Positions 36,982 through 62,029 of a DNA stretch of 64,000 bases are shown here, piece by piece (position 1 is the first letter of the stretch; each line of letters opens with the position of its first letter). Origin of the DNA: Pavona decussata (Eukaryota). The translations under genes and the position numbers were made by a program. The DNA is taken from the NCBI GenBank assembly GCA_977016875.1, contig CDRNST010000090.1:1736001-1800000 (forward strand), in the 5' to 3' direction. The notes beneath the pieces are model-generated. The model was given only the letters and a program-made list of their open reading frames with translations, did no database searches and was not told the origin of the DNA.

Positions 36982-39556
36982 ATGCAGTTCTTTCTGTTGA
37001 TGCCACTGATCATCTTTTTTGCCACATTCAAACTCGCCTACGGAGACGAAAACACTTCTGATATCGCCTTAGCCTCGAAAAATGATCAGGAAGTTGCGGT
37101 CGAGTCTGAAACCGAGGATGATGAAGAACTGGACGACGAAGCGGCAAAATACAGATGGCTGGCCCCACTGCTATATGATGAAATAGAGAAGCGAGGACGA
37201 AAAGGAAGAAACCGAAACCAAAATGCAGGAAATAGCAGTGAAACTTCGGCGGGGTCAAGCGAAGAGGAGGAGGAAGTGGAAAAGGACAGGAAGCCGAAAA
37301 ATCCAAAAAATAAAGGAAAGAAAAAGAGCAAAGGGAAAAAGAAAGGGAAGAAAAAGAATAAGCAGTTGATAAAAATTACAGAGGAAGGTATGCTTAAACT
37401 CTTAATAAATAATAGGAGAACAGTGATAAAAAGGTCGATCGACGGAACTCTTGAAAATCGATGCAAAGTTCAAAGCATTGCAAATTATGCGCTAAATAAA
37501 GTTATTTGCTCTTTTTATAACTGAGGCCAGATGTATTAAGAAACAGAACTGCTAAGCTAAACAGCATCTAGGGAGCGCCTTTCTCGAAAGTCCCGCAACT
37601 TACCACGTCAGGTATGACTATTTTTTGTTTTTAGATTAATTTGGGTCAGTGACACAAAAAACTGAAGTAACGTGAAATGAGGATCATTTTCCAACTGAGA
37701 ATTGTTCAGCCGGATGAACATTAATTCCTGAAATTTAGCTTTCAAAATCAACAAAATTGTTGTGTTGACGAGCAAGGTGCAGATAAAATAATTTTGGGAT
37801 ACGAAAAGATATCGGCGTCTTCGAGAAACGGAAGCCAGGATATCAAGAAAGGATTTGCCAGTTCATGAAGTGCTTCGTTATTAGCGGGAGCGCTACTTAC
37901 ACAGACTAAAAAGCCGGCCATCTGCGGCGACCCTAAAAGCTAGAGGGTGGAACGGTGGAATGGCGGAAAATCACCTCAAATCCTAAAAGACGGAACGGCG
38001 GAAAATCACCCCAAATAAACTACAACCTAAACCCTTAACCCTACCCTTTACCCTAACCTTACCCTAACCCTAAACCCTAACCCGCTCCCTCTTTTAGGAT
38101 AAGGGGTGCATGATTTCCGCCATTCCAGCTTCGAGGGTTGCCCGCCATCTGCGTGATTGAAAATTTCCGATGAGTTTACGGTTATCGTCATCCAGATTAT
38201 AATTAATCCTTCACAGTGAATGAACTGACCATAGACAGTTTTAATCTGAAAGGCACAAATATTTTGGATTAATCTTAATTGACTTATAGCTAGACTGGAA
38301 GACAAGTTTCACACAACCGGTAATTTCGGCATAGATTATAGGAGCAATACTAAACTTCGGAGGACAGATGACGTCTCTCTGATATCACTTCAGTGTAAAC
38401 TATGAAGACCTCTATGAACTATGTGAGGTAAATATTGGGGAAAAATTCACAACTTTCGACCCTAACAGTCAATCAGCAATCTAAAGAAACAATTCTTGCA
38501 TGGATACACCCTTGTTCTACCCTTAGAGTGTAATAGTATACTAGTTATTTTAACTTCCAAGTAACAAAGGTTAATTAAGTCTGAGGCGTGTTACTTCAAC
38601 ATGAAACCTACAGAAGACTGAAAAAATAGGAAGAATTGCAACCGACAATTTATGTGCATTAGTAATAACGTAAAACAAAAAATGCTAAAATCTCAGTAAA
38701 AAAAAGATTACCCTAAGCAGAAGTGCAATAACGGAAACCTTCGTCTACAGGGCAGAAAAGGGGTAATCTCTTGAATAACAGGCTAATTTGAACGTTAACT
38801 GAACTCCTCCGTCAGTCACCAAATGCCATGGAATTGTCATCGATTAAATATATTTGGCAAACTCACAACGGACACTGTTCAAAACTGCTTTCGGGAGCTC
38901 CCAGAAGCCACGAAAAAAAAACAATAAAATACGCCAAATGAGTTTTTTCAGACCTAATAATTGTAATTTGTGTAGGTTTTTGAGGGAAAATTGTTGTTTA
39001 ATTTTCGATCGAATTTCAACACCATACAAACTCTTATATTACGCTTTGTTGAACTGTGTGGGTAAGTCGTTTCTTAGAGCCAAGTAGGTAGACGTGTGCG
39101 TAAATTAAGATCTGTCATGTTGCTAAGCAACACCCTCTTAACCAGAATAGTAGGCTTAAACGATTCCTGGAGACGGTATTTTAAACTTTTGATGTGATCT
39201 GATCGGAGATTTTATAATTAACCCGAGAAAATAAAATGAAACAGACAGCAACGAATGTTCATACTAAGGGAATCAGCCGTATTTGAACATAGGATCACTG
39301 CAAGAATCTGTTATATGAAAGGATCGGAACTGGTAATATTTATTAAAAACTGAATCATTGTATAATGCAATTCGAGGGATTTGATTGGCTTAGCGGCCAT
39401 GGTATATGAGCCATTATATCATGGCCGAGAAATGGCGACCATTTAATTGTCTGCTGGTTACTCTTGGACAGCCAAATCAGTAAGATCTAGCAATATTTCT
39501 TGATTGTTTTTAATAAATTAATTATTCCACTTGCGCTTGTTGGAAATGAGATGATT

Positions 39557-39614
<58 letters not shown>

Positions 39615-42600
39615 GCACGTGGAATAATTGTTAAGTAGACCCAAGATAGGATCCTCTCTTGGTAGACGTGCAAGTATGCTTCGCCGGGAAGGACTGGAAT
39701 CTCGGTCTCCCGATAACGTGATAACCGCTACACAACAGGCGAACCTAAAATGAAAGCGGGCGAAATAGCATAGCTAAATGTCCATATACCCTGAAAAGTA
39801 CTGATTCAACTGCGATTCTATTTCATATTTTCTCAGAAAAAGTGCTGTGGTTCGATCCTCTGGGATGCTTCAGGGATAAGGGACCGAAGGCATGGAGGTA
39901 CCCCAACCTTCGTGCAATAAAATACTTAATCGAAAACTTCCGCAGGCGGATCGATAACTGGGCAAACTTCATATACGTCATCACAAACTGTGCCGTGAGA
40001 GCCCGAGCCGCCGGATGCAGCTGCTTTGGTATTCAGTTCTATGGTGAATGTTGGTGTGATCCCTTGGCCTGTTCCACTTACCACATCTACAAAAAATCGA
40101 GAAAGTGCATTGGAGGCGTTGGTCTTCACTGGGCCAACTTCGTTTACCGAGGGAAATGTGGATCAAGTAATGATGAAGAATTTTTTTAACAATTGACTTC
40201 CTGGAGGGTCTCAATGGGAGGATAGCTTTGACAGTTGACGGTTTTAGGGCTTTTGACGATTGACGATTATCAAGGGGAAATTTCTTCCAAGATGAGCTAA
40301 AATTAATATTAACTTTTGTGTTTTTTAATATTAACAAATGTGTTCTGGAGGTTGTTTTGTGGTCAGAAACATGTAGTGTACCATTAATGTTTTGAAACAG
40401 GAAGTGGAAAAGACAGAAAGTGAGCAGATTTTGGAACATGAAAACCGGTTCACCAGTTGAAACCGATTCTTCGAGAGCCAGAAGTCTGGGATGAGCAGCT
40501 GAAATCATGAGTGATTTTTCAGACCTTGAAACCGTTTGACGGCTAATAATAACCGGTTTTTTACGGTTGATGGTAAAATATTGTCCTTTTTTGACGGTTA
40601 ACGGTTAAATTTTAGGCTGTTTGACGGCTGACGGGTGACCCCACTGAGACCCTGTTCATGGACTTGCGAGAAATAGGTGATCTGAACTGATTTTAAACGT
40701 GGTTTTGTATTTGAGTCTGAAATATCGAAGATTGCCGGTATTTTTGGTGTAAATGTTTGAGAAGCTCAGAAAATTTCCACCTTGGATTTTATAGGAAACG
40801 ACATTCCATTCCCTTAATCTGCCTTATTCTTTAAATTTAAATTTCAACTTAACGATCCGATAAATCAAATTTATTTACAGGAGGCTCTTGTAGTATACGA
40901 AAAATTACATCAGTCGAAAGTATCATTTACAATTTTCTGTCTCCGTTATCAAGCTGTTGTTTCTCTTGCTTTCTTTTTCGTGTTTGACTGCTAGTATTAC
41001 GAAATATATCAGTGAAACACGCGAAAGAGTGCTTCATCTTAAATCAAACACTAAGAAATGGGATGAAAAAATGAGATGCAGTCAGTGAAACAATCTCTGT
41101 GGTGTTCTTATAGCTACTCAAACCAAAAATAATTCTAAGAGAAATTCTAAGCAAACTGTCACCAAATTTTATGATAATCGGATCAAATTTCAAAACCTTC
41201 TCTCTGTAGATTAAGAATTCGGCTTCAATTACTCTCATTTTGTTCATAGTTTTTGGATGCTGTAAAGATGGTGCTATGCCGGCCCTGGGTCCCAACTATG
41301 CAGGATGTCCAGGTGTGTATCTGTGTGTGTTTTAGTGTTAGTCATCCGATACATTAAATGAAATGATTATACGATGTACCACTTTTGGGATGTGCCTAAG
41401 AATAACAGTCACAAGTACTGCGCATGCGTACGTCAGGCTATTCATCAAATCAAACGTTTCAACAAATCTTAACTTCATGTAAGACCCAGATCCGCGTCAA
41501 TTATGTCGCAGATCAGTTTATCAATTTCCTTTTAAGGAAATTTTAAGAAAATATTAAGAAATTAAGCATTTATCAATCAACGTAGTCTAACTGGCATTTC
41601 CGAGGACCTATATTTTTTTAAGATCAACTGTTTAGATGCGTCGTCGTGTTTAACACGTTAAAGCAAAATGATTCGAACATGATTCTCAATCTTAGATTGC
41701 AGGACGGAAGTGGATTTGGTGTTCGTTATTGACGCCTCAGGGAGCATCGGAATAAACAACTTTAAAATGACAAAACAAATCCTGGTCAACCTAACCCGTC
41801 ATTTCTCCGTCAGCGCCACGCACGCACGAGTTGGCATCGTAAGATACTCTACAGCACCACGACGAATTTTCAGCTTGCCAAGGTCACAGAGGCTGGGCTT
41901 CATGGGGCTCGAGAAGAAACTCATCGGGATGCGTTACACTAGGGGCGGAACAAGGACCGGTGAAGCTCTAATGATGGCTTACAGAATGTTTACGCGTTCT
42001 CGTAGAAGGTTTCTTGGTCAAAACGTATACCATAAGCAGGTATTACTTTTACTGCTAACTAAATGGTAATGATCCGGTTAACAAACGGTATGTTTTTCTA
42101 TCAAAATGGCGTGTTTGGCTGAAAAGCTAGCCGAGTCGGCAAGGTTGGTAAGGATGTTGCTAGACAACAAGGATGTGTCCCCACGGAACAATGCACGTGA
42201 CTTGGTCACGCCTTTTCCAGCCTACTGATATCAGAAATTTATTGCTACACGCAATGTCCACTGTGGGTCAGCAGCGTCAAGTTGGAGTCCAATTTAACTA
42301 CAAGTAGTCTCTTGTTTTTTGCACATGCTAGTTGTATAAAACTCCACATCGAACGTTAAAATACTGTTTTTGGCGAATTAAGCGTCCGTCGTTAGCAGTT
42401 AAAAGTCCGAAGTTTTTAGTAACTAGCCCCTGAGACTTACTCCAATATGACACATGGAAATAGTTTGCCCTGCATTTCACTCGGAATAAGATGCACCAAA
42501 TTACAGCGTTTTGAGGAAACATGCCTGTCAACTGGACGCGTAAAGTACTGGAAAAGTAATATTGATTGCATGTATCAAAAACTTCACCCAAAAAACATTT

Positions 42601-45600
42601 TCAAAATATTGTGCAATCGATTAGTATCGATCTCTCTTCATCCTTAGTCCTTGCCTGCGCTAAGGGTTGGGTGAAATAAGACTAGTCTTGGATGTAATAA
42701 AAAACATTTTTTACTCTCAATGTATTAACTCTCCCCTCTCCCCCTCAGGTTTGTATTGTCCTGACCGACGGTCTTACCAACCCAATAGACGTGCCGACAC
42801 TTAACATTGCCACGAAAGCTCTAAAGCGCATTTCTCACGTGATAGCGGTCGGTGTGGCTGGAAAAGGATACAACGCCGGGGAAAGGCAACAGCAGAGAGA
42901 CGAGCTGAGTAAGATTGCCAGCAGCTTTGAAGATTTATTTTACGAGGCATCCTTTGAACAGGTCAGGGATCACGTGGATCCGATAGCCAAACGCGCATGC
43001 CCTCTGACACCCAAATTAGTGTAAGTACAACAATCATCTGTTAAAAGCTTGTCGAGCCCAAGTTTGCACGTGAGAGGTACTCGCACACAACAGTGATATT
43101 TACGGTCGAATTCTTTGTTCATCCCTCAACGTCCTTCGATTTCATTCTCAGACATAATTAATTCCAGTAGACACTTCAATCAATGTGATATTCACATTAC
43201 TGGTTTCCCATTTCTGCTATCAATGTTGTTCGTCACCTCTGTCATTTGCAAACTTGCATAATCATCAGTATGACGAGGAGAGAAACACGTTACCTGAGCC
43301 AACATTTGTGTGGTGAATAGTAATCAGACAAATAAACAGTTAGAATACTACAGAAAGCACTGAGGTTTTACGTAGCCACTAGAACATAAATTAGCGAACG
43401 CTTCGAACAAAACTGAGAATTACATACTCATTTAGTACCATTAACCGTTTTAATGGCTTATGTTGTTCATTGTCATTCCGCTACCTGACCCACATTGAGA
43501 GGGAGCGTAAACCACAGCTGTCCAGACTTAAGTCTTGAATTTTAATCATGAGTATGGTAATGACGACGACGATGACGACGACGATGATGACGATGATGGC
43601 ACACAAAAAGAACAGTGAGCTTTACGCACACATTCTACACGTTCTCGCTCTTCTTATCAATTTAAAAAATCAAAATTGAGAGGGCAAGAACAAGAACCAA
43701 TGGTAGGTATTTCCCATTTAGTGTTTCAGACCACTTTTAAAACACCAAATGAAGGGTTAACCCCCAATGAAAAAAAGAGGGCCTGGGTCTACCCAAGAGG
43801 CTCCACGAACTAAGACCTCGTGGTCCCATGATGCTTTTGTGGCTTTTTTCCTTGTGCTTCAAACCAATCGGTAGGTAAGTTTGTATATGCTTACTTTTAT
43901 GACTCGCTTTTATGATTTCCACTGTGTTTTTCTGACAGTGGGCCTATGTTTTTTTGTTGTTGTTGTTTTTCGTTTTTTTAATTTCTTCTTCTTTTCAGGA
44001 GATTGCCCTTTCCATGTATGTCTTCAAGACGTCACAAATCTCAAAAGAGAGATTGTTCGCGGTTGCCATGCATCTTCCCGCCAAACTCGGCTTTTTCTGC
44101 GGAGAATCACAATGATCATTCACCGCCAGAGCACTGCAAAGAGAACGGTTCTCTGCAGACGACTGCCAACTCCATCGAAACGCCGTGCTTTCAAAGCCGG
44201 GTTAATAGATTCTCGCTCATTTCAGAAATAATTTATTCCGGGCATAAGTGATGTGAACGATGATGATACGTTGTCCATTATGGCGGACATGTCTAACCTG
44301 GACTCCTGCCCACCTTGTATGCCTAATGGGGCACCAGTAGAGCCCAATGAGGCACCAGAAAAGCTACATGTAGCATTAGCAGAGTCTTCTAAGACACAAA
44401 AGAATACGAAGAATACCGTGCGTCTTGAGATGAACTGTGACGATCACGGCCTTTTTGATCCAGTTGCTAAGTTGGACACCAATTTTCGGGGAAAATTATC
44501 TTATCAGCGGTCGCTTGTTATTCTAAATGACTAGGCTATCTCAGATGTGGATTCCCTTCAAACTCCAAAGTTTTATCAGCAGTTGCCTTTAAAAATGAGA
44601 AAGTTCGTCGAAGAATTAAATTGAAAAAGAAATGTTTACCGTTCAGAGTGCCCTTTTAAATGCTTCAGGCCCTTTTTGTGGCCTTCATGATGCTATTGAA
44701 TCTGGTACATCTCCAACTTATGAAGAAATCAAACTTGTTTCGGAGTAAACACTACCTTCTAGGCTAAGCAAGCACTCAACTGTCGATGTTGAGGCGATAG
44801 AGGATCGTTGCAGCCATTAATAGTTTTCGAGAATAAACATCGCCGAGTGTCTTAGCCTAATGCGTAAGCTTGGTTATCTGGAGATGACTTCTCTTCCTGT
44901 TCCCTCAAACGGCCTCCAAACCCACCGCTACACGTGTTAACAGTTCTATGGAGAATTTTTTTATCTTCTAAATATAACTCCAGTAGAGCATCTTCGAATG
45001 CCTCAAAAGCACAATCATATCGAACTACAACGCATCTCGGTCAAAATTAAAAATGGAACTTTTTGTTCCCCAAAGGGACATTAGCCAGACTTTCACACTG
45101 CATAGTAGGAAGGAGAACCCTAACATCGGATCCAGAGATTCGTTTTTCTTTTTTCAGGTAACAAGATGCGTTTTTCCAGATCCCTTTTCAAAAATCTCTC
45201 CAAGTTACCAAAGCATCAGGTCAGAGGGTAATTCTAATTTCTCAGGAAGTCAATGAATCGCTACACAAAGGAGCTATAAAAATTAATCCTTTATCAAAAT
45301 GAGAGTTTTACAGTCGTCTGGTCCTTGTTCGTAAAAAGGACAAACCAATGCGTCCTGTGATAGATCTGAGTTCTCTAAACAAGTTCATAATCTAATCAAC
45401 AAGCACTTCCAGATCAGTGGAAAATTTAAGTTAAAGACTTAGCTTTTGCCAAGTGATTTTATGACCAGTGTATATTTAAAAGACGCATACCCTTCGGTTA
45501 CCTTTCACGAATGTTCACAAAAGTTCCTTCGTTCATTTGGAAGGGAAACTGCCATCAGTTCAAAGCTCTCTCGTTCGGCCTGTATTCAGCTCCCTGCATG

Positions 45601-47954
45601 TTGAAACCAGTTGCTGCCTTCCTAAGAAAGAAGTCTTTTCGAGTACTCATATACCTTTTCGATTTTCTTCTTTTAGCTCAATCGTAGGAAGAAGCGATCA
45701 GAAATACTCAACTTTGAGTAGCACTCCTTCAGTCCTTAGGTTACACTGTGAACCTCAAGAAATCCTCTCTACCTCCAACACAAGTGATCCCTTTCCTGGG
45801 TTTCAATATCCCTTAAAAGCCTATGATAATTTCACTCCCAACAGCAAAAGTGCACAAAATTCCTCACACGACTCTCTAACGTCGCTTTCACAGACATCTT
45901 TGCGACCGCCTCTCACATTCTAGGAAGAGACAATGTGTCTGCAGATACAGAGTCGAGGGTATTCAAAGACATGAACGAATAAAAGTTGAATCCAACCGTT
46001 AAACAACCCTTTCTGCAGAATTGTTAGGCCGATCTGTTTGCAAGTCGCCTGACTACTGTACTCAGCTCAAGAATTATATCAGCTGGAGGCCCGACCCAGG
46101 GGCCATCCACACAGATAACTTTACAATCCACTGGGCTCCCTTGAAGGCTTATATTATATATTTCAACCCCATAACCAAAAAGTACGAGGTGATGGTCGAC
46201 ACTACAGAGATAATTCTTGTTGCTCCAGTATGGCAGGCACAACTCTACTGAGTGGCCGGTTCTGCTGAAACTCCTAATAATCCAACCCGTACTTCTACCG
46301 AACAACCCAACCGACCTCAAGAGAGTCCACCCAATGTACCCTCGACTACACTAGGCCATATTTCACATTTCTACCGACGCTTCCAAGCTGCGGGCATTCC
46401 GGGAGACGTTGTCAAACTACTTATCGTAGCGACGAGTGCCTCCACATAAAAAACTTATGAATCAAGTTGGAACCTTTAGTGTCGGTGGTGTTCTGGAAGA
46501 CAAACTGATCCCGTTCATACATCTTTAAATGATATCCCAGTATTGGTGACAGAAGCTTTCAATGAAGGTTAAGCTTACAGATTACTCAATATCCTTTGGT
46601 CTCCTATTTTGTCTACTCATATCATTCTTCAATAGATGGATTCTCTGTTGGGCAACATCGGTGTGCCTCTAGGATCCTTAGAGAGATTCTCCGTACACGC
46701 CCTCCTAAACCTAGGTACTGACATACCTGGAGCGTTGATATCATCGTTAGATACTTTGGTTCTCTTGGTAAAAAGGAAGTCCCTTTCACTGAAAGGTTTT
46801 CCATGAAGTTAGTCACTCTGTTCACATTAACATGTCCTGAAAGGATTTCTGCCCTGGCTACTCTGGATCTCAGACATTGCAGTGTTCATCAAGAAGAGCG
46901 TCGTTTAACCTTTCTACTCCTAGCCTAAAAGCAGGTAAACAAGCAGAAGCCTTCTTTGTCCGTTTTGAACAAGGCAAAAACCTATATCCAGTAGAATGAT
47001 TTCGGTTATATCTCAAGGTAACCATAAATATTCATTTTGTCATTTCGTCCTCTCAACCGGACAGATTGCTCCTCTCCTCATTCGTCCCCACAAGTCCGTC
47101 ACGTCTACGACTTTAGGACACTTGCTGAGAACCTTTACGAAAGCAGCAGGAATAGACAGTCAAATCTTCAAAGCTCACTCTGTGAGTGGTGCTTCAATGA
47201 CAATAGCAGCCTTTCTTCCATTTTCAACCATCGTGGCTGTGGCTGATTGGTCTTTCCGTTCAACTTTTAGGACCTTCTATTACAAACTTTTGTTTAACTC
47301 AGACTTTGCGATGGGTGTATTATCGTCGAAGTAGATGACTGGTAGTTTTCAACGCTACTTGAAGGCCATGCAGATTAGAAGGGAATCGACAAAGTTTAAC
47401 AAGAACTCTTTTAATGAACAAAGCACGTTACTCAAACTGAAGAAACAGAATAAGAATGCATCCTTAAACGGAGACTGTGCATAAATACTTGAAGTGATAA
47501 TTCATATTATATTAACAGACGAAGTGAGAAATACATGAGTTCTTTCCCATACCCCTCCCTATATTTATTCCATTGTCGTCACTAGCCACAGAAGCATTAT
47601 GGGACCATGAGGTCTTGCATCCTGGGGCCTCTTGGGTAGACCCAGCCCCTATTCCTTTTTCACTGGGTGATATTTACGTACCATAACATCCTTTAACCCC
47701 ATCCTCGTTCCCAGAACTTTTTTCTCGTAAATTGGGAGGTCTCCCTTTCTCCCCATCCCTCCCCCCAATTTACAAAGGAAAGCCCTGGGAACGAGGTTGT
47801 CATGTCCCCCTTCCTAACAATGCAGCTGAAGTGAAGATATATCCGATCTGTCCCAAAGTAACATGGAATATAAGTAGAGACACAGCGGGACTATCAACTC
47901 ACTTATGATAGCTATAGATTTTACTTTTTTTTTATTTTTTTCAATTACAGGTAA
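36982..47954 (+). CDS. Secreted modular protein, copy A: signal peptide + acidic pro-region + Lys-rich tract + WSC-like Cys-rich domain + lagrin-like motif + VWA domain (about 472 aa)
   Basis: Exons 36982-37387, 39837-40166, 41250-41312, 41696-42039, 42749-43020, 47951-47954 (G+TAA); all GT-AG with matching phases. MQFFLLMPLIIFFATFKLAYG is the signal. GCFRD...FGIQFYGECW...GVGLHWANFVYR is the Cys-rich domain. FGCCKDGAMPALGPNYAGCP is the lagrin-like motif. VWA: DLVFVIDASGS...GGTRTG...VLTDG. If the last intron is unspliced the stop is at 43024. Confidence 0.85.
37926..38143. mobile_element. MITE with telomere-like core, specific to gene copy A
   Basis: TIR ggcgaccct / agggttgcc and subterminal IR ggaatggcggaaaatca / tgatttccgccattcc. 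Direct repeat gccatctgc at 37917-37925 and 38144-38152. Copy B has the empty site (about 56761). The core is (ccctaa/taaccct)-like. Confidence 0.75.
39335..39635. mobile_element. Short element with 3' hairpin, specific to copy A intron
   Basis: attattccac...gttggaaatgagatga..atagccaac / gttggctat..tcatctcatatccaac...gtggaataat palindrome; missing from copy B (about 57890). Confidence 0.65.
40204..40653. mobile_element. MITE with gacggtt subrepeats (complete in copy A, only the left end in copy B)
   Basis: TIR agggtctcaatggg / cccactgagaccct; the left ~60 bp recurs at about 58470-58530. Confidence 0.65.
43760..47668 (+). mobile_element. Decayed DIRS-type (tyrosine recombinase) retrotransposon with inverted terminal repeats
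   Basis: Approximately 85-bp ITRs at 43762-43844 and 47584-47668 (ctgggtctacccaagagg...tggtccca / tgggacca...cctcttgggtagacccag). Frameshifted RT about 45260-45720 (FYSRLVLVRKKDKPMRPVIDLSSLNKF, LKDAY, QFKALSFGL). Methyltransferase-like remnant about 46020-46380 (SWRPDPGAIHTD, LVAPVWQAQ). Tyrosine recombinase C-terminus 46996-47334 (FKAHSVSGAS...ADWSFRSTFRTFY). Absent from the matching intron of copy B. Confidence 0.85.
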
Positions 47955-50449: not shown

Positions 50450-52556
50450 TTTCTTTTTTTTCATCTGTGAGAAGTTCATTCTTTTTCTCATCTGAATCTG
50501 AGAAAAGCTCACTCATTTTTTTTTCTTTTTTATCTGTGAAAAGTTCACTCATTTTCTCATCTGAGAAAAGCTCACTCCTTTTCTCATCTTTGAAAAGTTC
50601 ACCCATTTCCTCATCTGTGAAAATCTCACTCATTTTCTCATCTGTAAAATTAGCTCACTCATTTTCTCATCTGTGTAAAGCAAACTCATTTTCTCATTTG
50701 TGAAAAGCTCACTCATTTTCTCATCTGTGAAAAGCTCACTCATTTTCTCATCTGTGAAAAGCTCACTCATTTTCTCATCTGTGAAAAGCTCGCTCATTTT
50801 CTCACCTGTGAAAAGCTCACTCATTTTCTCATCTGTGAAAAGCTCACTCATTTTCTCATCTGTGAAAAGCTCACTCATTTTCTCATCTGTGAAAAGCTCA
50901 CTCATTTTCTCATCTGTGAAAAGCTCACTCATTTTCTCATCTGTGAAAAGCTCACTCATTTTCTCATCTGTGGAAAGCTCACTCATTTTCTCATCTGTGA
51001 AAAGCTCACTCATTTTCTCATCTATGAAAAGCTCACTCATTTTCTCATCTGAGAAAAGCTCACTCATTTTCTCATCTTTGAAAAGTTCACCCATTTTCTC
51101 ATCTGTGAAAATCTCACTCATTTTCTCATCTTTGAAAAGCTCACTCATTTTCTCATCTGTGTAAAGCAAACTCATTTTCTCATTTGTGAAAAGTGCACTC
51201 ATTTTCTCATCTTTGAAAAGCTCACTCATTTTTTCATCTGTGAAAAGCTCCCTCATTTTCTCATCTGTGAAAAGCTCACTCATTTTCTCATCTGTGAAAA
51301 GCTCACTCATTTTCTCATCTGTGAAAAGCTCCCTCATTTTTCTCATCTGTGAAAAGCTCCCTCATTTTCTCATCTTTGAAAAGCTCACTCATTTTTTCAT
51401 CTGTGGAAAGCTCACTCATTTTCTCATCTGTGAAAAGCTCACTCATTTTCTCATCTGTGAAAACCTCACTCATTTTCTCGTCTGTGAAAAGCTCACTCAT
51501 TTTCTCATCTGTGGAAAGCTCACTCATTTTCTCATCTGTGAAAAGCTCACTCATTTTCTCATCTGTGAAAACCTCACTCATTTTCTCGTCTGTGAAAAGC
51601 TCACTCATTTTCTCATCTGTGGAAAGCTCACTCATTTTCTCATCTGTGAAAAGCTCACTCATTTTCTCATCTGTGAAAAGCTCACTCATTTTCTCATCTG
51701 TGAAAAGCAAACTCATTTTCTCATCTGTGAAAAGCTCACTCATTTTCTCATCTATGAAAAGCTCACTCATTTTCTCATCTGAGAAAAGCTCACTCATTTT
51801 CTCATCTTTGAAAAGTTCACCCATTTTCTCATCTGTGAAAATCTCACTCATTTTCTCATCTTTGAAAAGCTCACTCATTTTCTCATCTGTGTAAAGCAAA
51901 CTCATTTTCTCATTTGTGAAAAGTGCACTCATTTTCTCATCTGTGAAAAGCTCACTCATTTTTTCATCTGTGAAAAGCTCCCTCATTTTCTCATCTGTGA
52001 AAAGCTCACTCATTTTCTCATCTGTGAAAAGCTCACTCATTTTCTCATCTGTGAAAAGCTCACTCATTTTCTCATCTGTGGAAAGCTCACTCATTTTCTC
52101 ATCTGTGAAAAGCTCCCTCATTTTTCTCATCTGTGAAAAGCTCCCTCATTTTCTCATCTTTGAAAAGCTCACTCATTTTTTCATCTGTGGAAAGCTCACT
52201 CATTTTCTCATCTGTGAAAAGCTCACTCATTTTCTCATCTGTGAAAACCTCACTCATTTTCTCGTCTGTGAAAAGCTCACTCATTTTCTCATCTGTGGAA
52301 AGCTCACTCATTTTCTCATCTGTGAAAAGCTCACTCATTTTCTCATCTGTGAAAAGCTCACTCATTTTCTCATCTGTGAAAAGCAAACTCATTTTCTCAT
52401 CTGTGAAAAGCTCACTCATTTTCTCATCTGTGAAAAGCTCACTCATTTTCTCATCTGTGAAAAGCTCACTCATTTTCTCATCTGAGAAAAGCTCACTCAT
52501 TTTCTCATCTGTGAAAAGCTTACTCATTTTCTCATCTGTGAAAAGCTTACTCATTT
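50450..52556. repeat. 27-bp satellite/minisatellite array, about 78 units
   Basis: Unit tcatctgtgaaaagctcactcattttc; it produces the FTDEKMSEL / VKSSLIFSS pseudo-ORFs. Confidence 0.97.
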
Positions 52557-52609
52557 TAGCTCGTGAAAGCAGCCAACGAATTATTGCTGACAGTGTACAG
52601 TTCCACCAA

Positions 52610-53515: not shown

Positions 53516-53695
53516 TTAATCCATACAGGATCAATGCCTAAAATAACCTCTTATATGAAAGAAACGAAAGTAAGTAAACCTGGAAAAGCAAGATATAACG
53601 CAAGACATTAAACCTGGATTAAAAACCTCATCTTCTCTAGGACGGATATTTTTGTCCTTTATTGACCAATTGATCAATGAGAATCCGTACATTTA

Positions 53696-54258: not shown

Positions 54259-55839
54259 GGTCTTGGTGGGTCCTAGAAACTGAAATACTACTGAAATACC
54301 ATTTTGATTGACCGATTCTTCGTATTCCTAACAGTTTTTGCGCACTGAGTTTTGAAAAACGTGCTCTGCACGGGTCTGGATATTCGAATTAATATGTAAC
54401 CGCTTTGTAAAAGACATTAATGAGTTGATACTGAGACGAGCAGCTATCCGCCTGTCTCTGGCGAGATAGAATGGTAAGATTAATACAAGAACTACAGATA
54501 AAAAAGGGCCTTAGTGCTCAGCAACAAATTTAAGCAAGGTACTAACAGTCAACCTTAAGCGAGGTCGGCCTCGGTGTACAACCCTCGATGACAGCTATTC
54601 CTTATCCCCCAGATTTGCCGAGGTTGTTATTTCTCAAATTATTGGTAGAGTTATCCCTTAACTGAAACTAAGTGAGAATTTCCCATAACTTTTCTAGGTA
54701 GTTATCATTTGCACGTATCGAGTTTTCGGTAATCCCTATATACAAAACCCTTGTGAGGGTCTCATTAGTCGTATTATATTCCTCCGATCCCGAAACAATT
54801 CCCATGCTCTTGAGTATGATTATGATGATAGGGTATTTAAATTAACACAGTTCCATAAACTTCATAAAAAGAGGTAGTAAAATCGTAAATAATTATCAAG
54901 TAATTACCATTAAAAGGATTTTCTTTTTTCATGGCGTGAAAATCAATGCTCAGATGCACTGATTTTCTAAGTGCTAATTCACCAATGCACCTTCCACGTA
55001 ATAAACCAAAACCGACAATAAATTTTTTCTTATCCAATTAATGCCTCTGGTTCATTTCAAGTTACGGCAGACTTAACAGTGGTGAAAAATGAAAGGCTAG
55101 CGAACCAAAAATAATTTTAAGCCAGCCAGACAAAAAACGCTTACTTCATTTTTCCGATATTGGTCGTTCGACTGTAGATAATTTTAAGGACACTCAAAAT
55201 TGATTGGCGCTGATTACTCCTATTGTAAACTGAAAAGAAAACAAATAGATGCTTTTAAAATGCCCAAAGGAAGCGATTTAGTTTCGTGGATACGAAGTTA
55301 ATTACGTGTTTTGCTATATCTTAAACTGCAACATTTGTCCTGCATCGCATTTTCAGTTAGTTTCTTCGATGATCACAAGGAAGAACCGGTAAGTTTTTGT
55401 TGGATTTTTAATCTTTAGAAGTAAATGCCACTGAACTAAAATGGGAGATTATGTTTTAACAGCAAAAAGGGGCTGAAGCTATTATTTAGTGTTTGTTTTA
55501 AATTTTCTTAGAAAGCATTGCTCCATTTAAGTCATTTTGGCGTTCTTTAAATCTTCATGATCTTCTGGAATTGAATTTTTTTTGTGAAGAATGGTTGACG
55601 CATGCTAGTGCGTTCCATTAGAGTGTCGCGTCGGTAAAATGTGAAGCAGTTTCCAGGGTTCTTTCATTGCCATTCAAGTTTTTTTGTTTGTTTGTTTCGT
55701 TTGTTAGGTTCATATCATATCTCGCCTTCCTCGCTTCATTGTCTCCACCTCGTTATGGGGGGTTGTTAGTAACAAATGTCACTGGTAGCTCGAAAATCCA
55801 TCTGTTCTAATGTACTGTTGTTTTTCTCTTGAAGACATC

Positions 55840-58800
55840 ATGCAGTTCTTTCTGTTGATGCCACTGATCATCTTTTTTGCCACATTCAAACTCGCCTACG
55901 GAGACGAAAACACTTCTGATATCGCCTTAGCCTCGAAAAATGATCAAGAAGTTGCGGCCGAGTCTGAAACCGAGGATGATGAAGAACTGGACGACGAAGC
56001 GGCAAAATACAGATGGCTGGCCCCACTGCTATATGATGAAATAGAGGAGCGAGGACGAAAAGGAAGAAAAGGAAGGGAAGGAAGAATAGGAAGGAAAGGA
56101 AGAAAAGGAAGGGAAGGAAGAATAGGAAGGAAAGGAAAAAAAGGAAGGATAGGAAGGAAAAGACCAAAAAACGGAAAGAAACTTGCAGGGAAAAGCAGTA
56201 AATCTTCGGCGGCGTCAAGCAAAGAGAAGGCAAAGAAGAAAAAGGAAGGAGGGAAAAAGGGCAAAGGGAAAAAGAAAGACGGGAAGAAAAAGAATAAGCA
56301 GTTGCAAAAGGAAGGTATGCTTAAGCTCTTTATCAATAACAGGAGAAAAGTGATAAAAAGGTCGATCGACGGAACTCTTAAAAAATTCGAAGCATTGATT
56401 CATAATGGGCAGAATGACATTGCCGGCGAAAATGAGTAAATGAGATTTACATCAGTCTATGCCTTATGAAGTTCATATCAGGTGTATTAAGAAACAAAAC
56501 TAAGCTAGTCATTGGGAGGCGTCTCTCTTAAAAATCCTGCTACTTACCACGGCAGATAAGATGATTTTTTTGCGATCAAATTTAGCTTTCAAATTCAACA
56601 AAATTGACGTTATGTTGAAGAGCATTGTGCAGCTAAAATAGTTTTCAGGCCGGAAAAGTTTTCGGTGTCTTCGAGAAAGGGGTCCCGGGATTTATTTCAT
56701 GAAGTGATTCGCAAAAAGTGGGCGCGCTACTCAAACAGACCATAAATCCGAGTCTAATCCGGCCATCTATACGCGTCATTGAAAATTTCAGATGAGATCA
56801 CGGCCATCGTACATCCAGATTATAATTAATCCTTCATTGTGAATAAACTGACCGCAGTCGGACAATTTTAATCCGAAGGGGAAAATCTTTTGGATATTAA
56901 TCTTTATTGATTAGTAGTTAAACTGAAAGACAAGTTTTACAGGCTAACCCCGGGTTAGTTTAATCGTCTTAATCGTGCTTTGAACCACTGGGCGTAGAGC
57001 AGTAGTTCTACAGTTCTTTCTCAGGCACAGCTGATGTCTTCCTGGTGTCGTACGTCAATTATAAACTATGAAATGTGTGAGGTAAATATTCAAGTGGCGG
57101 ATAATTCGCAACTTTCTACTCTAAAAGTCATTCAGCAATCTGAGAAACAATTTTTGGATAAACTAAACGAGTAAAAGACGAAATTTTAACTGAAAGTTTC
57201 ACATTTTATTCCTGTGTTCTCACCGGCTATGAGAAAATAGGTTTGTTTAAGTTCATAGACTTACTGTTCGCTGTTATTTTACTGTTTATAGCTATGACCA
57301 ATGTATACTTGAAAAAAACATTTAGTGTAGATCCTCATATTTAAATTTTCTTTCTCTAATTATATTGTCAGGAATGTATGGTATGACCCTAGCAATGAAC
57401 TAAGAAATTTGAGCGAGTGTAAAGAAGAATATAAAAAAATCAGACCTTTTCTCCGCTAATTATTTATCAATGAGGTCAGGTAAATCCTGATATTGTCACG
57501 GCTATCAATCTTTTTCCTTCAGGCTATAACATTGTCGAAGTTGTTAGAAAGTCGTTTCTAAGAGGCAAGTAGGTAGACGAAATGTTAACGCTCGACATCA
57601 ACACTCGAATCTCTTTACGGTGGCCAAACTTCCTTTCTTTATCAAGTCTGTTGATAAACCAAACAGTCGCGCTTTCACCAAGACTTGTCATGTTGCTAAG
57701 CAACACCGCATTTACGAGATCAGGTGGCTCAAATGATTCCTGGAGACGGTATTTTAAACTGTTGATGTGATCCGACTGGGAATTTTAACATGAAAAATAA
57801 ACTGAAACAGACAGCAATGAATGTTCATACTAAGTGAATCAGGCGTATTTTAACATAGGATCACTGCAAGGATCTGTTATATGAAAGGAACAAGTATGTA
57901 GATGGGCCTTAAAATAAAAAAAAAAACGTATTATGTCAAAATATATGCTTCGCCGGGAAGGACTCGATCCAACCTCGGTCTCCTGATAACGTGACAACCG
58001 CTACGTACAGCAGGCGAAACTCAATGGAAGTGGGCGAAAGAGAACAGCCACATGTCTATATACCCTGAAAAATAACTCATTTAGCTGCAATTCTATTTCA
58101 CAGAAAAATCGCTGTGGTTTGAACCGCTGGGCTGCTACAACGATAAAGGACCGAAGGCATGGAGGGAGCCCAAACTTCGCGCAATCAAATTCTTAATCAA
58201 AAACTTCCGCAGGCGGATCGATAATTGGAAAAACTTCACATACGTCATCACAAACTGTGCTGCGGAAGCCCAAGCCGCCGGATGCAGCTGCTTTGGTGTT
58301 CAGTTTTATGGCGAATGTTGGTGTGATCCCTTGGCCTGTTTCACTTACCACATCTACAAAAAATCGAGAAAGTGCATTGGAGGCGTTGGTCTTCACTGGG
58401 CCAACTTCGTTTACCGAGGGAAATGTGGATCAAGTAATGATGAAGAATTTTTTTAACAATTGACTTCCTGGAGGGTCTCAATGGGAGGATAGCTTTGACA
58501 GTTGACAGTTTTAGGGCTTTTGATGAGTTTTTGATGGTCGAAAATGTCCACATCGTAATTTTATCAGAAAATTACATTTAATTATTCAGATCAAGGATCC
58601 ACGCAAATCAAATTTACTTACAGGAGGATCTTGAAGTAGACGAAAACGTGAAATCAATCAAAAGTTCCATTTACAATTTTCTGCCTCCTTTATCAAGCTT
58701 CTGTTTTATTTTTTTGCTTTCTTTATCATTTAATTTTATTCTGATTTCGAGTTTGAATGCTAGTTTTACACAACAAATCAAAAACACAAGCGAGAGAAGT

Positions 58801-61800
58801 GGAAGACTTGGAAAATGAGGTGCATTCAGTGAATCACTCTTTCTTGTGCTTGCTAAAGTTTCTCAAACCAGCAATAATTCTTGGAGAAATTTGAAGAAAC
58901 ATTTGACCCGATTTTGTAATAATGGGAACAAACTTCTTATTGGTCTTCCCGGTAGTTTAGAATTCCACTTGAATTGCTCTTTATTTTACAGGTTATGGCT
59001 GCTGTAAAGATGGTGCTATGCCGGCCCTGGGTCCCAACTATGCAGGATGTCCAGGTGTGTATCTGTGTGTGTTTTAGTGTTAGTCATCCGATACATTAAA
59101 TGAAATGATTATACGATGTAACACTTTTGGGATGTGCCTAAGAATAACAGTCACAAGTAGTGCGCATGTGTACGTCAGGTAACTTGGCTACTCATCAAAT
59201 CAAACGTTTCAACAAATCTCAACTTCATGTAAGACCCAGATCCGCGTCAATTATGTCGCAGATCAGTTTATCAATTTCCTTAAATATTAAGAAATTAAGC
59301 ATTTATCAATCAACGTAGTCTAACTGGCATTTCCAAGGACCTTTATTTTTTTAAGATCAACTGTTTAGATGCGTCGTCGTGTTTAACACGTTAAAGCAAA
59401 ATGATTCGAACATGATTCTCAATCTTAGATTGCAGGACGGCAGTGGATTTGGTGTTCGTTATTGACGCCTCAGGGAGCATTGGAAAAAAAAACTTTAAGA
59501 TGACAAAACAAATCCTGCTCAACCTAACCCGTCATTTCTCCGTCAGCGCCAAGCATGCAAGAGTTGGCATCATAAGATACTCTACAGCACCACGACGAAT
59601 TTTCAGCTTGCCAAGGTCACAGAGGCAGGGCTTCATGGGGCTTGAGAAGGAAATCATCGGGATGCGTTACACTAGGGGGGGAACAAGGACAGGCAAAGCT
59701 CTAAAGATGGCTTACAGAATGTTTACGCGTTCTCGTAGGAGGTTTTTTGGTCAAAACGTAAACCATAAGCAGGTATTACTTTTACTGCTAACTAAATGGT
59801 AATGATCCGGTTAACAAACGGTATGTTTTTCTATCAAAATGGCGTATTTGGCTGAAAAGCTAGCCGAGTCGGCAATGTTCGTAAGGATGTTGCTAGACAA
59901 CAAGGATGTGTCCCCACGGAACTAGGCACGTGACTTGGTCACGCCTTTTCCAGCCTACCGATATCAGAAATTTATTGCTACACGCAATGTCCACTGTGGG
60001 TCAGCAGCGTCAAGTTGGAGTCCAATTGAACTACAAGTAGTCTCTTGTTTTTTGCACATGCTAGTTGTATAAAACTCCACGTCGAACGTTAAAATACTGT
60101 TTTTGGTGAATTAAGTGCCCGTCGTTAGCAGTTAAAAGTCCGAAGTTTTTAGTAACTAGCCTCTGAGGCTTACTCCAATATGACACATGGAAATAGTTTG
60201 CCCTGCATTTCACTCGGAATAAGATGCACCAAATTACAGCGTTTTGAGGAAACATGCCTGTTAACTGGACGCGTAAAGTACTGGAAAAGTAATATTGATT
60301 GCATGCATCGAAAACTTCACCCAAATCCAAAACAATTTTCAAAATATTGTGCAATCGATTAATATCGATCTCTCTTCATCCTTAATCATTGTCTGCGCTA
60401 AGGGTTGGGTGAAATAAGACTAGTCTTAGTTGTAATAAAAACCATTTTTGACTCTCAATGTATTAACTCTCCCCTCTCCCCCTCAGGTTTGTATTGTCCT
60501 GACCGACGGTCTTACCAACCCAAAAGACGTGCCGACATTGAACATTGCCACGAGAGCTCTAAAGCGCATTTCTCACGTGATAGCGGTCGGTGTGGTTGGA
60601 AAAGGATACAACGCCAGGAAAAGGCAACAGCAGAGAGACGAGCTGATTAAGATTGCCAGCACCTTAAAAGATTTATTTTACGAGGCATCCTTTGAACAGG
60701 TCAGGGATCACGTGGATCCGATAGCCAAACGCGCATGCCCTGTGACACCCAAATTAGTGTAAGTACAACAATCATCTGTTTAGAGCTTGTCGAACCCAAG
60801 TTTGCACTTGAGAGGTACTCGCACACAACAGTGATATTTACGGTCGAATTCTTTGTTCCCCCCTCAACGTCCTTCGATTCCATTCTCAGACATAATTAAT
60901 TCCAGTAGACACTTCAATCGATGTGATATTTACATTACTGGTTTCCCATTTCTGCTATCAATGTTGTTCATTACCACTGTCATTTGCAAACTTGCATAAT
61001 TATCAGTATGGCGAGGAGAGAAACACTTTACCTTAGCCAAAATTTGTGTAATGAATAGTAATCAGACAAAGAAACAGTTAGAATACTACAGAAAGCACTG
61101 AGGTTTTACGTAGCCACAAGAACATAAATTAGCGAACACTTCGAACAAAACTGAGAATTACATACTCATTTAGTACCATTTCCCGTATTCATTGTCATTC
61201 CGCTACCTGACCCACATTGAGATTTTTCATTTCTGCTATCAATGTTGTTCATCACCACTCTAACTTGCAAACTTGCATTAATTATGAACATGACGAGGTC
61301 AGGCACATCTCATCTGTACAAAAATTTGTCTGTTGAATTGTAGTCAGACAGATAAGCAGTTGAAACACTACAGAAAGTACTGAGGTTTTACGTGCCCACC
61401 GGGACATAAATTAGCGAATACTTCAAACAAAACTGAGAATTACATACCCATTAAGTACCATATTCCGTATCAATGTTGTTCATTGTTATTCGGCTATCCA
61501 AACTTGCAACCCATATTAAGAGAGAACGTACACCACGTTTTCCACAGTCAGTATTCTTAATTGCCATTCTTCTTACCAATTTAGACACTAAAATCGAGAC
61601 AGAAATTAAAGTACACTACATCTTATCTTCGCCAACATTTGCAGTGGCGTGTCTAGGGGAGGGGGCTCGGGGATCCCGCTCCCTTCCCCCTTATGTTTTA
61701 AGCCACGTCGTGACATTTCCTCTTACGGAGGGAAGCAAGCCACCACTTACCTTAAAGTCTGAATCCCCAACTGCATTTGCATCTTGAATAACAATGGAAG

Positions 61801-62029
61801 ATATAATTGGTTGGGTGATATTTACGTACCACAACACCCCTTTACTCCAACCTCGTTCTCGTTCAAGGGAAAGCCCTGGGAACGAGGTTGTCATGTCCCC
61901 CTTCCTAGCAATGCAGCTGAAGTGAAAGTACATCAGATTTGTCCCAACATGGTATGGATCATAGGTAGAGACATAGCGGGGCTACCAACTCACTTATAAT
62001 AGATTTTACTTTTTTTCAATTACAGGTAA
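55840..62029 (+). CDS. Secreted modular protein, copy B (tandem paralog of copy A, about 495 aa, with G-X-Y basic tract)
   Basis: Exons 55840-56314, 58104-58433, 58992-59054, 59429-59772, 60487-60758, 62026-62029. Internal exon sizes are identical to copy A (330, 63, 344, 272 nt) and the frame is open. If the last intron is unspliced the stop is at 60762. Confidence 0.85.
60946..61520 (+). repeat. ~280-bp tandem duplication in the last intron of gene copy B
   Basis: catttctgctatcaatgttgttcat...aaaactgagaattacatac occurs at 60947 and again, diverged, at 61228; it is single-copy in copy A (43208-43500). Confidence 0.85.

Follow-up and report, generated by a model that had tools for sequence, protein, structure and literature searches.

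What kind of protein is specified by the two similar genes that lie in tandem on the plus strand of this 64,000-nucleotide stretch of Pavona decussata DNA (the window), and what might it do? Copy A spans 36982 to approximately 48260 and encodes 472 aa; copy B spans 55840 to approximately 62335 and encodes 495 aa. Each contains six GT-AG exons, and BLASTN comparison of 36.0–44.5 kb with 54.5–63.0 kb revealed colinear blocks of 79–98% identity, confirming an earlier note's observation of a tandem pair. On balance, we favour the view that these are two paralogs of a conserved stony-coral gene for a secreted, strongly cationic cross-linker of 470–495 amino acids from which an acidic piece may be cut off.

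In copy A, exon 1 (36982–37387, ending in phase 1) carries the start codon, signal peptide, acidic piece and basic tract, with the same start and layout as in the orthologs P0151 and P0198. Exon 2 (39837–40166; 330 nt) encodes the predicted WSC-fold domain and exon 3 (41250–41312; 63 nt) the lagrin-like mini-module GCCKDGAMPALGPNYAGCP; both are phase 1-1, in agreement with the phases first proposed. Exon 4 (41696–42039, phase 1-0) codes for the N-terminal half of a VWA domain with the DASGS and GGTRTG elements of its MIDAS, and exon 5 (42749–43020; donor AGT/GTAAGT) for the C-terminal half with LTDG and the clasp cysteine. The corresponding exons of copy B are located at 55840–56314 (signal peptide, acidic piece, 87-residue basic tract), 58104–58433 (WSC-fold domain, 86% amino acid identity to copy A), 58992–59054 (lagrin-like mini-module), 59429–59772 (VWA N-terminal half with the MIDAS DASGS) and 60487–60758 (VWA C-terminal half). 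The five-exon models were the same for exons 1 to 4 and closed with 42749–43024 and 60487–60762; all borders are GT..AG, and the summed lengths of 1419 and 1488 nt yield the 472 and 495 aa given in the earlier note.

A sixth exon was recognized in copy B from a contig of run X1 which leaves the gene at 60762 and whose next 30 letters match 62030–62059 exactly. Since GTAA is present on both sides of this junction, the canonical cut is 60758/62026. Exon 6 (62026–62335, AATAAA at 62311, 3' end approximate) begins with the base that completes the final Val codon and goes on with the stop (TAA, 62027–62029) and the 3' UTR, leaving the encoded protein unchanged; its stop explains why the earlier note ended the pair at 62029. 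The copy A equivalent (47951–48260, TAA at 47952–47954, last codon base and 3' UTR likewise, AATAAA at 48239, 3' end approximate) was placed by similarity to copy B exon 6 and not by reads, the two being 85% identical and sharing the acceptor ...caattacag/GTAACGG. The preceding copy A intron (43021–47950) harbours unclassified ORF-bearing sequence.

Are these exons joined in RNA? The joints 58433>58992, 59054>59429 and 59772>60487 are present in X1 contigs, two of the three also in run X8, and none was found in DNA run X2; copy B exons 2–6 are thus transcribed and spliced, the spliced contigs being absent from the DNA run. The X1 contig over copy B exon 2 shows zero differences and is joined to exon 3. 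Run X8 yielded A-like spliced exons 2–4, with copy-A letters at seven of nine diagnostic sites of exon 4 and also at position 55958 (exon 1), and an A-type contig covering copy A exon 1. Because X1 contains no exon-1 contig and retains 146 nt of unspliced intron 1 (the copy-B contig runs on without a gap from 57958 across the acceptor of exon 2), splice support for copy B in this species is limited to exons 2–6. The joint between exons 1 and 2 was observed only in orthologous transcripts, namely P0151 (467 aa, from a 1522-nt metatranscriptome contig) and Stylophora pistillata XP_022791975.1 (six transcript-like contigs of approximately 1.55–1.6 kb), with both of which the window exon pieces align colinearly at the predicted borders.

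This pattern raises the question of whether copy B is turning into a duplicate that is non-coding or truncated, with transcription starting mostly within intron 1 and the signal-peptide exon left out. The unbroken contig, the depth in X1 (0 over exon 1 versus approximately 6–11 over exons 2–6) and in-frame stops upstream of exon 2 would fit such decay. However, copy B retains six intact exons with canonical splice sites and in most pieces lies slightly nearer to the ortholog than copy A does. Contigs break at a high-copy repeat (57440–57930), and holes in coverage carry no proof. We regard decay of copy B as quite unlikely, and retain two protein-coding paralogs as the preferred reading.

The N-terminal region is an alternation of charged blocks. 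All of the motifs described in the earlier note, that is, a signal peptide, ESETEDDEELDDE, DEIEKR (copy A) or DEIEER (copy B), a basic tract and GCCKDG...GPNYAGC, were recovered in both copies. The 21-residue signal peptide ends in AYG and is the same in A and B. It is followed by an acidic piece of 50 residues (net charge -13/-15) ending in a conserved RWLAPxLYDEIE(K/E)R; two residues differ between the copies, which end in YDEIEKR (A) and YDEIEER (B). The Lys/Arg-rich tract comprises 64 residues (net +12) in copy A and 87 (net +36) in copy B, where a purine-rich tandem repeat (56052–56162; period 36 nt, 2.9 copies, 92% matches) has widened it into 12 Gly-X-Y-like triplets (GRK/GRE/GRI) with a weak, below cut-off match to Pfam Collagen (E 6.6e-5). 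These blocks are common to three species (the window, P0151 and P0198), with acidic pieces of -13 to -15 and basic tracts of +11 to +36. Basic clusters lie immediately after the conserved helix: EKRGRKGR in copy A, EERGRKGRKGR in copy B, KERERRS in P0151 and EKRSKRKNK in Stylophora. It is plausible that the acidic piece is cleaved as a propeptide. Against this, copy B and P0151 have no Lys-Arg pair at the conserved position, and the charge of the piece cannot neutralise a mature part of +40 (A) or +74 (B).

A signal peptide plus an acidic propart might also be read as the sorting and processing signature of a cnidocyst (nematocyst) component, in which the polycation would bind polyanionic capsule contents or the tubule scaffold. 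The proparts of nematocyst proteins, toxins and minicollagens among them, are described as polar and acidic with a Lys-Arg end (Anderluh et al. 2000, cited in PMC3447340), and the venom proteome of a sea anemone is reported to include proteins with WSC domains (PMC6627431). A Lys-Arg pair occupies the conserved position in copy A and Stylophora, but it is Glu-Arg in copy B and P0151. Moreover, the proparts described in PMC3447340 are 9–17 residues long versus 50 here, and such proparts are also mentioned there on proteins outside nematocysts. A cnidocyst role is therefore rather unlikely, and an extracellular cross-linker remains our preferred reading.

Which domains follow the charged region? 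The earlier note had pointed to a Cys-rich exon of 110 residues, and this can now be given an identity. The AF2 model of the exon-2 domain (pLDDT 94.5) has the WSC fold, all of its top seven Foldseek matches in the PDB being WSC-bearing proteins, including Wsc1 (7pz2), Kremen (5fwv/5fws) and Fusarium glyoxal oxidase (9n3u). Pfam WSC scores this exon below cut-off (E 0.2–0.35) and a sequence profile of the domain retrieved none of the solved WSC domains; phmmer connects it with proteins in which Pfam does recognise WSC, and its ESM Atlas neighbours are cnidarian WSC clusters. Copy A exon 2 possesses eight cysteines plus a ninth (KCGS), which probably belongs to the adjoining linker module, so that exon 3 is not a whole module. 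The linker is of a 4-Cys, GCCxDG...GC type. The proposed lagrin-like exon stands as far as the motif is present; its identity is by motif only, and Pfam finds nothing in this module at E up to 1, nor does it match either of two related modules when E is raised to 10. Other genes of the same genome also have the motif, on small exons that end in phase 1, and both exon 3 and the exon-2 WSC behave as shuffled single-exon modules elsewhere in it, which upholds the suggestion of exon shuffling.

The C-terminal VWA domain belongs to the collagen-VI/matrilin type, and its MIDAS (DASGS, GGTRTG, LTDG) is complete, as first described. Pfam VWA E-values are 7e-19 (copy A), 1.3e-20 (copy B) and 1.6e-28 (P0151), exons 4 and 5 of copy A covering profile positions 1–98 and 106–170, respectively. 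Foldseek returned VWF A1, collagen VI N5, MIC2, integrin I domains and PTMP1, and phmmer against the PDB gave collagen VI alpha-3 (E 1e-46) and PTMP1 (E 3e-13), with MIDAS and clasp cysteines lining up in the PTMP1 alignment. The net charge of the domain is +15 to +31 across three species (exon 4 alone, +16 in copy A and +21 in copy B). It is thus Arg/Lys-rich as noted before but not unique in this respect, since the nearest VWA paralogs (contig C70), which are large matrix-type proteins, have pI values of 11.4–11.9.

Coral skeletal proteomes repeatedly contain ECM-type domains, VWA among them (PMC3748352; PMC4890752), and the orthologs identified so far come from coral material, including Stylophora. 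Perhaps, then, calicoblasts secrete these proteins into the skeletal organic matrix or a settlement matrix, where they would link the ECM to acidic proteins or polysaccharides of the matrix. The two Acropora papers just cited, however, describe no WSC-VWA protein of such size, and for the optimised skeletal proteome of S. pistillata neither the Stylophora accession, its locus name nor 'MUP-4' was found in the main text or in the supplements examined. We give this proposal little credence in comparison with the more general cross-linker.

How widely is the gene distributed? Both copies form a clade of 10 with eight other exon-2 (WSC) sequences (support 100/97), within which A and B are sisters (100/98). 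This genome holds at least 127 matches to the WSC-like exon, and the ten nearest of them, which represent the own-genome paralogs in the tree, fall outside the clade. Since the eight sequences come from other assemblies, including that of a pocilloporid coral, the family is coral-wide and the term lineage-specific applies to the tandem duplication alone. The order of signal peptide, acidic piece, RWLAPxLYDE(I/L)x(K/E)R, basic tract, WSC, linker and VWA is common to three species; P0151 shows 58–85% identity to the window exon 2–5 pieces and 50% to P0198. As anticipated, the architecture has no family name: the sole annotated ortholog, XP_022791975.1, is 'uncharacterized protein LOC111331177', an older model of it (PFX24792.1) bears the automatic name 'Transmembrane matrix receptor MUP-4', and none of four identifiers of this ortholog was mentioned in the literature searched. 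The gene is present in other corals without prior study, and specifies a moderately unusual matrix-type protein rather than a new kind of system.

The duplication is recent, judging from a dS of approximately 0.10 and the sister position of the copies. Identity between their exons (91–96%) does not exceed that of introns 3 and 4 (92–96%) and dN/dS is 0.61, which suggests weak or mixed constraint after duplication. The first 228 nt of exon 1 contain just three differences; exon 5 carries 11 non-synonymous changes versus one synonymous. A dN close to intron divergence, together with the exon 5 counts, the very high net charge and the enlarged basic tract of copy B, might point to a mucus or surface defence protein whose polycation and lectin-type WSC bind microbes, with fast, microbe-driven evolution after duplication. 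Yet the counts are small and also compatible with relaxed constraint, the protein is not known to carry an antimicrobial motif or to be induced by immune challenge, and a basic VWA is shared with the large paralogs on C70. A defence function appears improbable to us, and we return to the cross-linker.

The most likely role is that of an extracellular cross-linker of glycans or polyanions and a protein ligand. After removal of the signal peptide, the acidic N-terminal piece would partly offset the cationic tract in the secretory pathway, until cleavage of the proprotein-convertase type, within the basic cluster directly behind the conserved helix, freed a mature polycation of approximately +40 (A) or +74 (B). 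The WSC domain and the Lys/Arg tract may then bind glycans or polyanions (sulfated glycosaminoglycans, for example), and the MIDAS of the VWA may grip a protein partner, for instance a collagen, by an acidic side chain; the mature protein would thereby cross-link extracellular material. After duplication, the basic tract of copy B grew by its 36-nt repeat. From the earlier note's overall reading, the secreted-type multidomain protein with a WSC fold and a MIDAS-complete basic VWA is retained, with the lineage restriction confined to the duplication.

Compared with known systems, the acidic piece resembles cnidarian toxin and minicollagen proparts, as described in PMC3447340 after Anderluh et al. 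2000, in following the signal peptide and being rich in Asp/Glu, but differs in its length and its conserved hydrophobic/aromatic motif. The exon-2 domain shares its fold with the WSC domains of yeast Wsc1, Kremen and fungal glyoxal oxidase (Foldseek probability 1.0, TM 0.56–0.67) at approximately 15% identity, and copy A has eight cysteines like these if the KCGS cysteine is set aside; unlike them, the window proteins have no membrane anchor or kringle/CUB context. Among the lagrin repeats of papilin/MIG-6, those of MIG-6 have disulfide-bonded cysteines 15 residues apart (C833-C848 and C864-C879; bioRxiv 10.1101/2025.02.10.637428), which equals the distance from the second Cys of GCC to the last Cys of the window linker, a comparison made by motif and cysteine spacing as no lagrin profile exists. 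Those proteins carry a lagrin array, whereas the linker here is single and without a papilin cassette or Kunitz domains. The nearest solved VWAs, those of collagen VI N-domains, matrilins and mussel byssus PTMP1 (in whose entries zinc occupies the MIDAS), have the N- and C-terminal clasp cysteines and MIDAS in common, but occur with several VWAs or collagen/coiled-coil parts and without WSC, lagrin-like linker or charged N-terminal blocks. Small, secreted cnidarian 'cartilage matrix protein-like' proteins of approximately 420 residues (ESM Atlas cluster; P0202, 29% identical to P0151 residues 136–467 over 98% of that stretch) likewise combine an N-terminal WSC-type domain with one C-terminal MIDAS VWA; they have a TSP1 repeat in place of the 20-residue lagrin-like linker, no acidic/basic N-terminal blocks and a less basic VWA (net +8). 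XP_022791975.1 and P0151 match the window copies in length class (466–467 aa), order of parts and a GCCxD(G/N)...GC linker, but each is known as a single sequence as against the tandem pair here, and the Gly-Arg/Lys tract of copy B is expanded.

The open stretches and intron borders read in the window, which is eukaryotic DNA of approximately 38% GC on contig C90 of a 602-Mb assembly, show that the two genes (copies A and B) share a layout of five coding exons on the plus strand, with GT..AG borders throughout. The coding exons of copy A lie at 36982–37387, 39837–40166, 41250–41312, 41696–42039 and 42749–43024, and those of copy B at 55840–56314, 58104–58433, 58992–59054, 59429–59772 and 60487–60762. 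The summed exon lengths bear out the products of 472 and 495 amino acids proposed in an earlier note made from the sequence alone, and the borders in both copies agree with its placing of exons 2 and 3 in phase 1-1. BLASTN comparison of 36.0–44.5 kb with 54.5–63.0 kb gave colinear blocks of 79–98% identity, and the pair is therefore a tandem duplication. Runs of N occupy positions 129–377 and 13253–13392 of the window.

Public sequencing runs, comprising DNA runs and small runs which come from the same organism and behave as RNA, were compared over positions 55600–61100. In the RNA-type run X1, a 737-nt contig corresponds to 57958–58433, 58992–59052 and 59427–59626 with at most one difference, and a second one links 59769 with 60484. 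In the DNA run X2 the introns were covered and none of the X1 splice joints was present. A third X1 contig follows the stretch as far as 60762 and then continues with 30 letters identical to 62030–62059. Since GTAA is present on both sides, the canonical cut is 60758/62026 (AGT/GTAAGT ... ttacag/G). Exon 6 of copy B thus starts at 62026 with the base that completes the final codon, followed by the stop (62027–62029) and a 3' UTR with AATAAA at 62311; this stop accounts for the position, 62029, at which the earlier note had ended the pair. In copy A, exon 6 starts at 47951 on the same strand after an intron of 4.9 kb, and is 85% identical to that of copy B. A second RNA-type run, X8, yielded a spliced exon 2-3-4 contig with copy-A letters at seven of nine diagnostic exon-4 sites, and a contig of exon 1 whose letter at 55958 is that of copy A. 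Taken with the copy-B contigs of X1, these indicate that both copies are transcribed.

The joint between exons 1 and 2 was not seen in the RNA-type contigs of this species. Exon 1 had zero depth in X1, and an X1 contig passes without a break across the end of intron 1 into copy B exon 2 (57958–58103) although introns 2, 3 and 4 had been spliced out, its 146 unspliced nucleotides upstream of the exon-2 acceptor reaching a high-copy repeat. This continuity could reflect intron retention, transcription from an internal start or an effect of assembly. Stops in the frame upstream of exon 2 rule out an alternative start there in either copy, so that no transcript beginning at that place could encode the protein. 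The repeat itself (57440–57930, copy B intron 1) attained a depth of approximately 5800 in the DNA run against 40–60 nearby. It also occurs in RNA-type contigs, one of which ends at 57926 and continues with 12 A, and it borders the X1 contig that enters intron 1; it has the appearance of a SINE-like element whose tail is rich in A.

Several other features lie within and between the genes. Between the copies, a 27-bp minisatellite (50532–52557; 75 copies, 92% matches) is the source of long spurious ORFs on either strand (DEKMSELFT... and SSLIFSSVK...). Copy A intron 1 contains a short interstitial telomere-like repeat of the CCCTAA type (38026–38082), and the last intron of copy B a 282-bp unit repeated 1.9 times with 82% matches (60947–61470), both units of which are matched by 43209–43441 of copy A. 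Several ORFs of 60–130 amino acids lie in copy A intron 5 (43881–47334) and in the spacer (48926–49724), in sequence which is absent from copy B. None of these ORFs matched a Pfam model, and the sequence is probably a decayed mobile-element insertion.

Homology searches were run with each in-frame exon piece, the full-length protein being represented by P0151, from a metatranscriptome, and P0198, from Stylophora pistillata. Using phmmer, exon 2 gave 514 matches among 1.84 billion representatives. The closest of these (52–69% identity) are short single-exon ORF calls from unspliced contigs, with ends near the same exon borders, and the farther ones are multi-domain proteins carrying Pfam WSC beside ADAMTS, TSP1, SUEL-lectin or VWC domains. 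P0151 (467 aa; 1522-nt transcript-like contig) sits in the 90% cluster of the best exon-2 match and has exactly the predicted architecture, with the join of exons 1 and 2 visible (...KEEEE/KIWFDH...). As a query it led to one annotated ortholog, P0198 (XP_022791975.1; "uncharacterized protein LOC111331177", 466 aa, 50% identical). An older model of this protein was automatically named "Transmembrane matrix receptor MUP-4", and the same 466 amino acids are found in six transcript-like contigs. In alignments to these two proteins the exon pieces of the window fall in colinear order, with their borders where predicted. P0151 is filed under a 135-aa single-exon fragment (P0003) which leads its 90% cluster; length-filtered searches miss such members, a general trap for eukaryotic genes in this protein collection. 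P0198, as query of a word-based search of representatives, returned only itself. Since full-length members are concealed in fragment-led clusters, the absence of more full-length orthologs says little.

Maximum-likelihood analysis of the WSC-type domain placed the window copies as sisters (100/98). Together with eight candidate orthologs, assigned like all tree members by their WSC-type exon 2, they form a clade of ten (100/97), outside which fall the ten paralogous exons that are closest to them in their own genome. The gene is therefore common to corals and the duplication alone is local. The lineage specificity suggested in the earlier note thus holds for the tandem duplication and fails for the gene itself, which shares its clade with sequences of other assemblies, a pocilloporid coral among them. 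Summed over exons 2–5, the copies differ with dS 0.10, dN 0.06 and omega 0.61, and in exon 5 a single synonymous change stands beside 11 non-synonymous ones; identity is 92–96% in introns 3 and 4 and 91–96% in the exons. These values, based on small counts, fit relaxed or diversifying evolution since a recent duplication. Exon 1 differs at only three sites over its first 228 nt, a near-identity pointing to gene conversion or strong constraint.

The N-terminal half is arranged in blocks of opposite charge. A heuristically predicted signal peptide of 21 aa, with a hydrophobic core and A-Y-G before the cut, precedes a 50-aa acidic piece (net charge -13 in copy A, -15 in copy B) and a basic tract (+12 over 64 aa and +36 over 87 aa, respectively). 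The downstream WSC exon (+12, +11) and VWA exon 4 (+16, +21) are also positively charged. The same charge blocks recur in P0151 and the Stylophora protein. The most conserved segment in this half, RWLAPxLYDE(I/L)x(K/E)R, is predicted by AF2 to be helical, at modest confidence, and in every ortholog the basic cluster follows it directly. The extra charge of copy B stems from a 36-nt purine repeat at about 56052–56156; a weak Pfam Collagen match in this copy was rejected as an artefact of the repeat, which has 12 proline-free triplets.

Loss of the acidic piece through a cut at the basic cluster would be a plausible, putative step. In the main rival reading, the protein would be a cnidocyst component. 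Acidic proparts ending in Lys-Arg are known in nematocyst proteins (PMC3447340), and WSC proteins are present in an anemone venom proteome (PMC6627431). The acidic piece is, however, three to five times longer than the 9–17-aa proparts of the nematocyst type, and the Lys-Arg is not conserved, being present in copy A and Stylophora but replaced by Glu-Arg in copy B and P0151; moreover, such proparts also occur on non-nematocyst proteins (PMC3447340). An Anderluh-type propart, i.e. an acidic stretch of 9–17 aa ending in Lys-Arg right before the mature protein, was not found here. Neither was the ortholog accession in the supplements of the Stylophora atlas which we searched.

The Cys-rich exon 2 scores 11.6 and 12.3 bits (E-value=0.35 and 0.21) against Pfam WSC (PF01822), under the gathering threshold of 27.8 bits. 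The AF2 model of the window exon has a pLDDT of 94.5, and the first seven PDB entries retrieved with it by Foldseek all bear WSC domains, namely yeast Wsc1, Kremen and a Fusarium glyoxal oxidase (E-value=2e-4 to 5e-2; TM 0.54–0.67), PAN/apple modules ranking next. Multi-domain phmmer relatives of the exon are Pfam-significant for WSC (P0019, 2.9e-22; P0027, 2.9e-20), the stretch matching the query best in some relatives being other than the one which Pfam scores best. No solved WSC was recovered from the PDB sequences with a profile of 70 relatives, and a match of such a profile to TRPM5 (E-value=0.08) was set aside as chance. Judged by the modelled fold, the transitive homology and the ESM Atlas neighbours considered alongside them, we regard exon 2 as a divergent WSC domain, one of at least 127 WSC-like exons in the genome. 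It is a lectin-type module with putative carbohydrate binding.

The 20-aa GCCKDG...GPNYAGC linker of exon 3 and its related modules match no Pfam model. Related modules of the form C-x5-9-GCC-x-D/N-G...GC, on short exons which also end in phase 1, were located in genes on two other contigs of this genome, C56 and C248. The former (2.897–2.917 Mb, minus strand; loci L023, L030, L037) has ShK-type domains alternating with GCCxDG/GCCxNG mini-modules, and in the latter (1.069–1.079 Mb, minus strand; loci L027, L036) one lagrin-like module (…YGCCPDGKTPAAGPHQAGCPG) comes after an array of ten or more EGF-like exons. The linker thus occurs as a mobile Cys-rich mini-module of extracellular proteins. 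Both of these genes have an extra Cys before the GCC, whose counterpart in the pair is the Cys of KCGS ending exon 2, kept in all orthologs and missing from the paralogous WSC exons. From this placement and conservation, the linker is probably a four-Cys unit across the exon 2/3 border, in which case the WSC of copy A would keep the canonical eight Cys. The disulfide Cys of the MIG-6 lagrin repeat are spaced by 15 residues (bioRxiv 10.1101/2025.02.10.637428); a link of the module to the "lagrin" repeats of papilin, drawn from the motif and this spacing, is unproven. Pfam Papilin_u7 matched neither this genome nor the controls. A GCCxDG..GP pattern at the DNA level gave six matches in the genome and six in the reversed control, no better than chance, with two clearly related modules among the non-self matches.

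Exon 4 matches Pfam VWA (PF00092) over profile positions 1–98 (E-value=7e-19 in copy A, 1.3e-20 in copy B), and exon 5 extends the match over positions 106–170 with a weak score; in the spliced P0151 the profile is covered from 1 to 170 (E-value=1.6e-28). The AF2 model of P0151 has 10-residue block-mean pLDDT values of 86–97 across residues 271–460 and shows a Rossmann-like alpha/beta fold; with it Foldseek found at least 500 PDB VWA matches (best E-value=1e-12), including VWF A1, collagen VI N5, MIC2, integrin I domains and mussel PTMP1. Against PDB, the best phmmer matches are collagen VI alpha-3 and PTMP1, with the MIDAS residues and clasp cysteines aligned in the latter. The complete MIDAS which had been read from the sequence (DASGS, GGTRTG, LTDG) stands in both copies when aligned with P0151, P0198 (DSSGS) and PTMP1. 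D-x-S-x-S, Thr and Asp are present in A, B, P0151 and P0198, and from these residues a metal site is predicted. The basic character of the VWA is not unique to the pair, as its nearest VWA paralogs are likewise basic (pI 11.4–11.9). They form a cluster on contig C70 (131–197 kb; loci L015, L018, L020–L022, L031–L033) in which single-exon VWAs, extremely Arg-rich with net charges of +23 to +34, alternate with short WSC-type exons on one strand.

Coral mucus, adhesive, skeletal and cnidocyst matrices consist of shuffled extracellular modules, and most such proteins are unnamed. We conclude that the pair encodes a secreted, extracellular matrix-type protein with a lectin-type WSC, a VWA predicted for metal-dependent adhesion and a polycationic tract suited to polyanions. 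Its most likely function is that of a predicted extracellular cross-linker. A skeletal role found no support: the Stylophora ortholog was not found by identifier in one skeletal-proteome paper, and two Acropora skeletal-proteome studies do not describe the architecture. Literature searches by ortholog identifiers produced no mention, and those for WSC with VWA in coral no paper on this architecture by title or abstract. Perhaps, although we consider it improbable, the conserved order of acidic piece, helix, basic cluster and polycation marks a self-packaging "pro-polycation", condensed with its own acidic propeptide in secretory vesicles until it is cut by a convertase. The lectin/VWA glue so released, with a charge of +40 to +74, would condense or anchor a polyanionic material, which might be poly-gamma-glutamate or chondroitin in cnidocysts, a larval or basal adhesive, or acidic skeletal matrix. 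If true, corals would have their own counterpart of the coacervate-type bioadhesives.

The pair opens no new category of system. It defines a compact, conserved and experimentally tractable coral family, in which a putative acid/base charge switch precedes a single WSC, a linker and a single VWA, and which public annotation calls "uncharacterized" and has once mislabelled MUP-4. The family could serve as a model for the cooperation of a WSC lectin with a MIDAS adhesion module and for the secretory handling of strongly cationic proteins. The closest larger group is the cnidarian "cartilage matrix protein-like" cluster, which has WSC, TSP1 and VWA within approximately 420 aa; the pair differs from it in possessing the mini-linker instead of TSP1, together with the charged N-terminal blocks.
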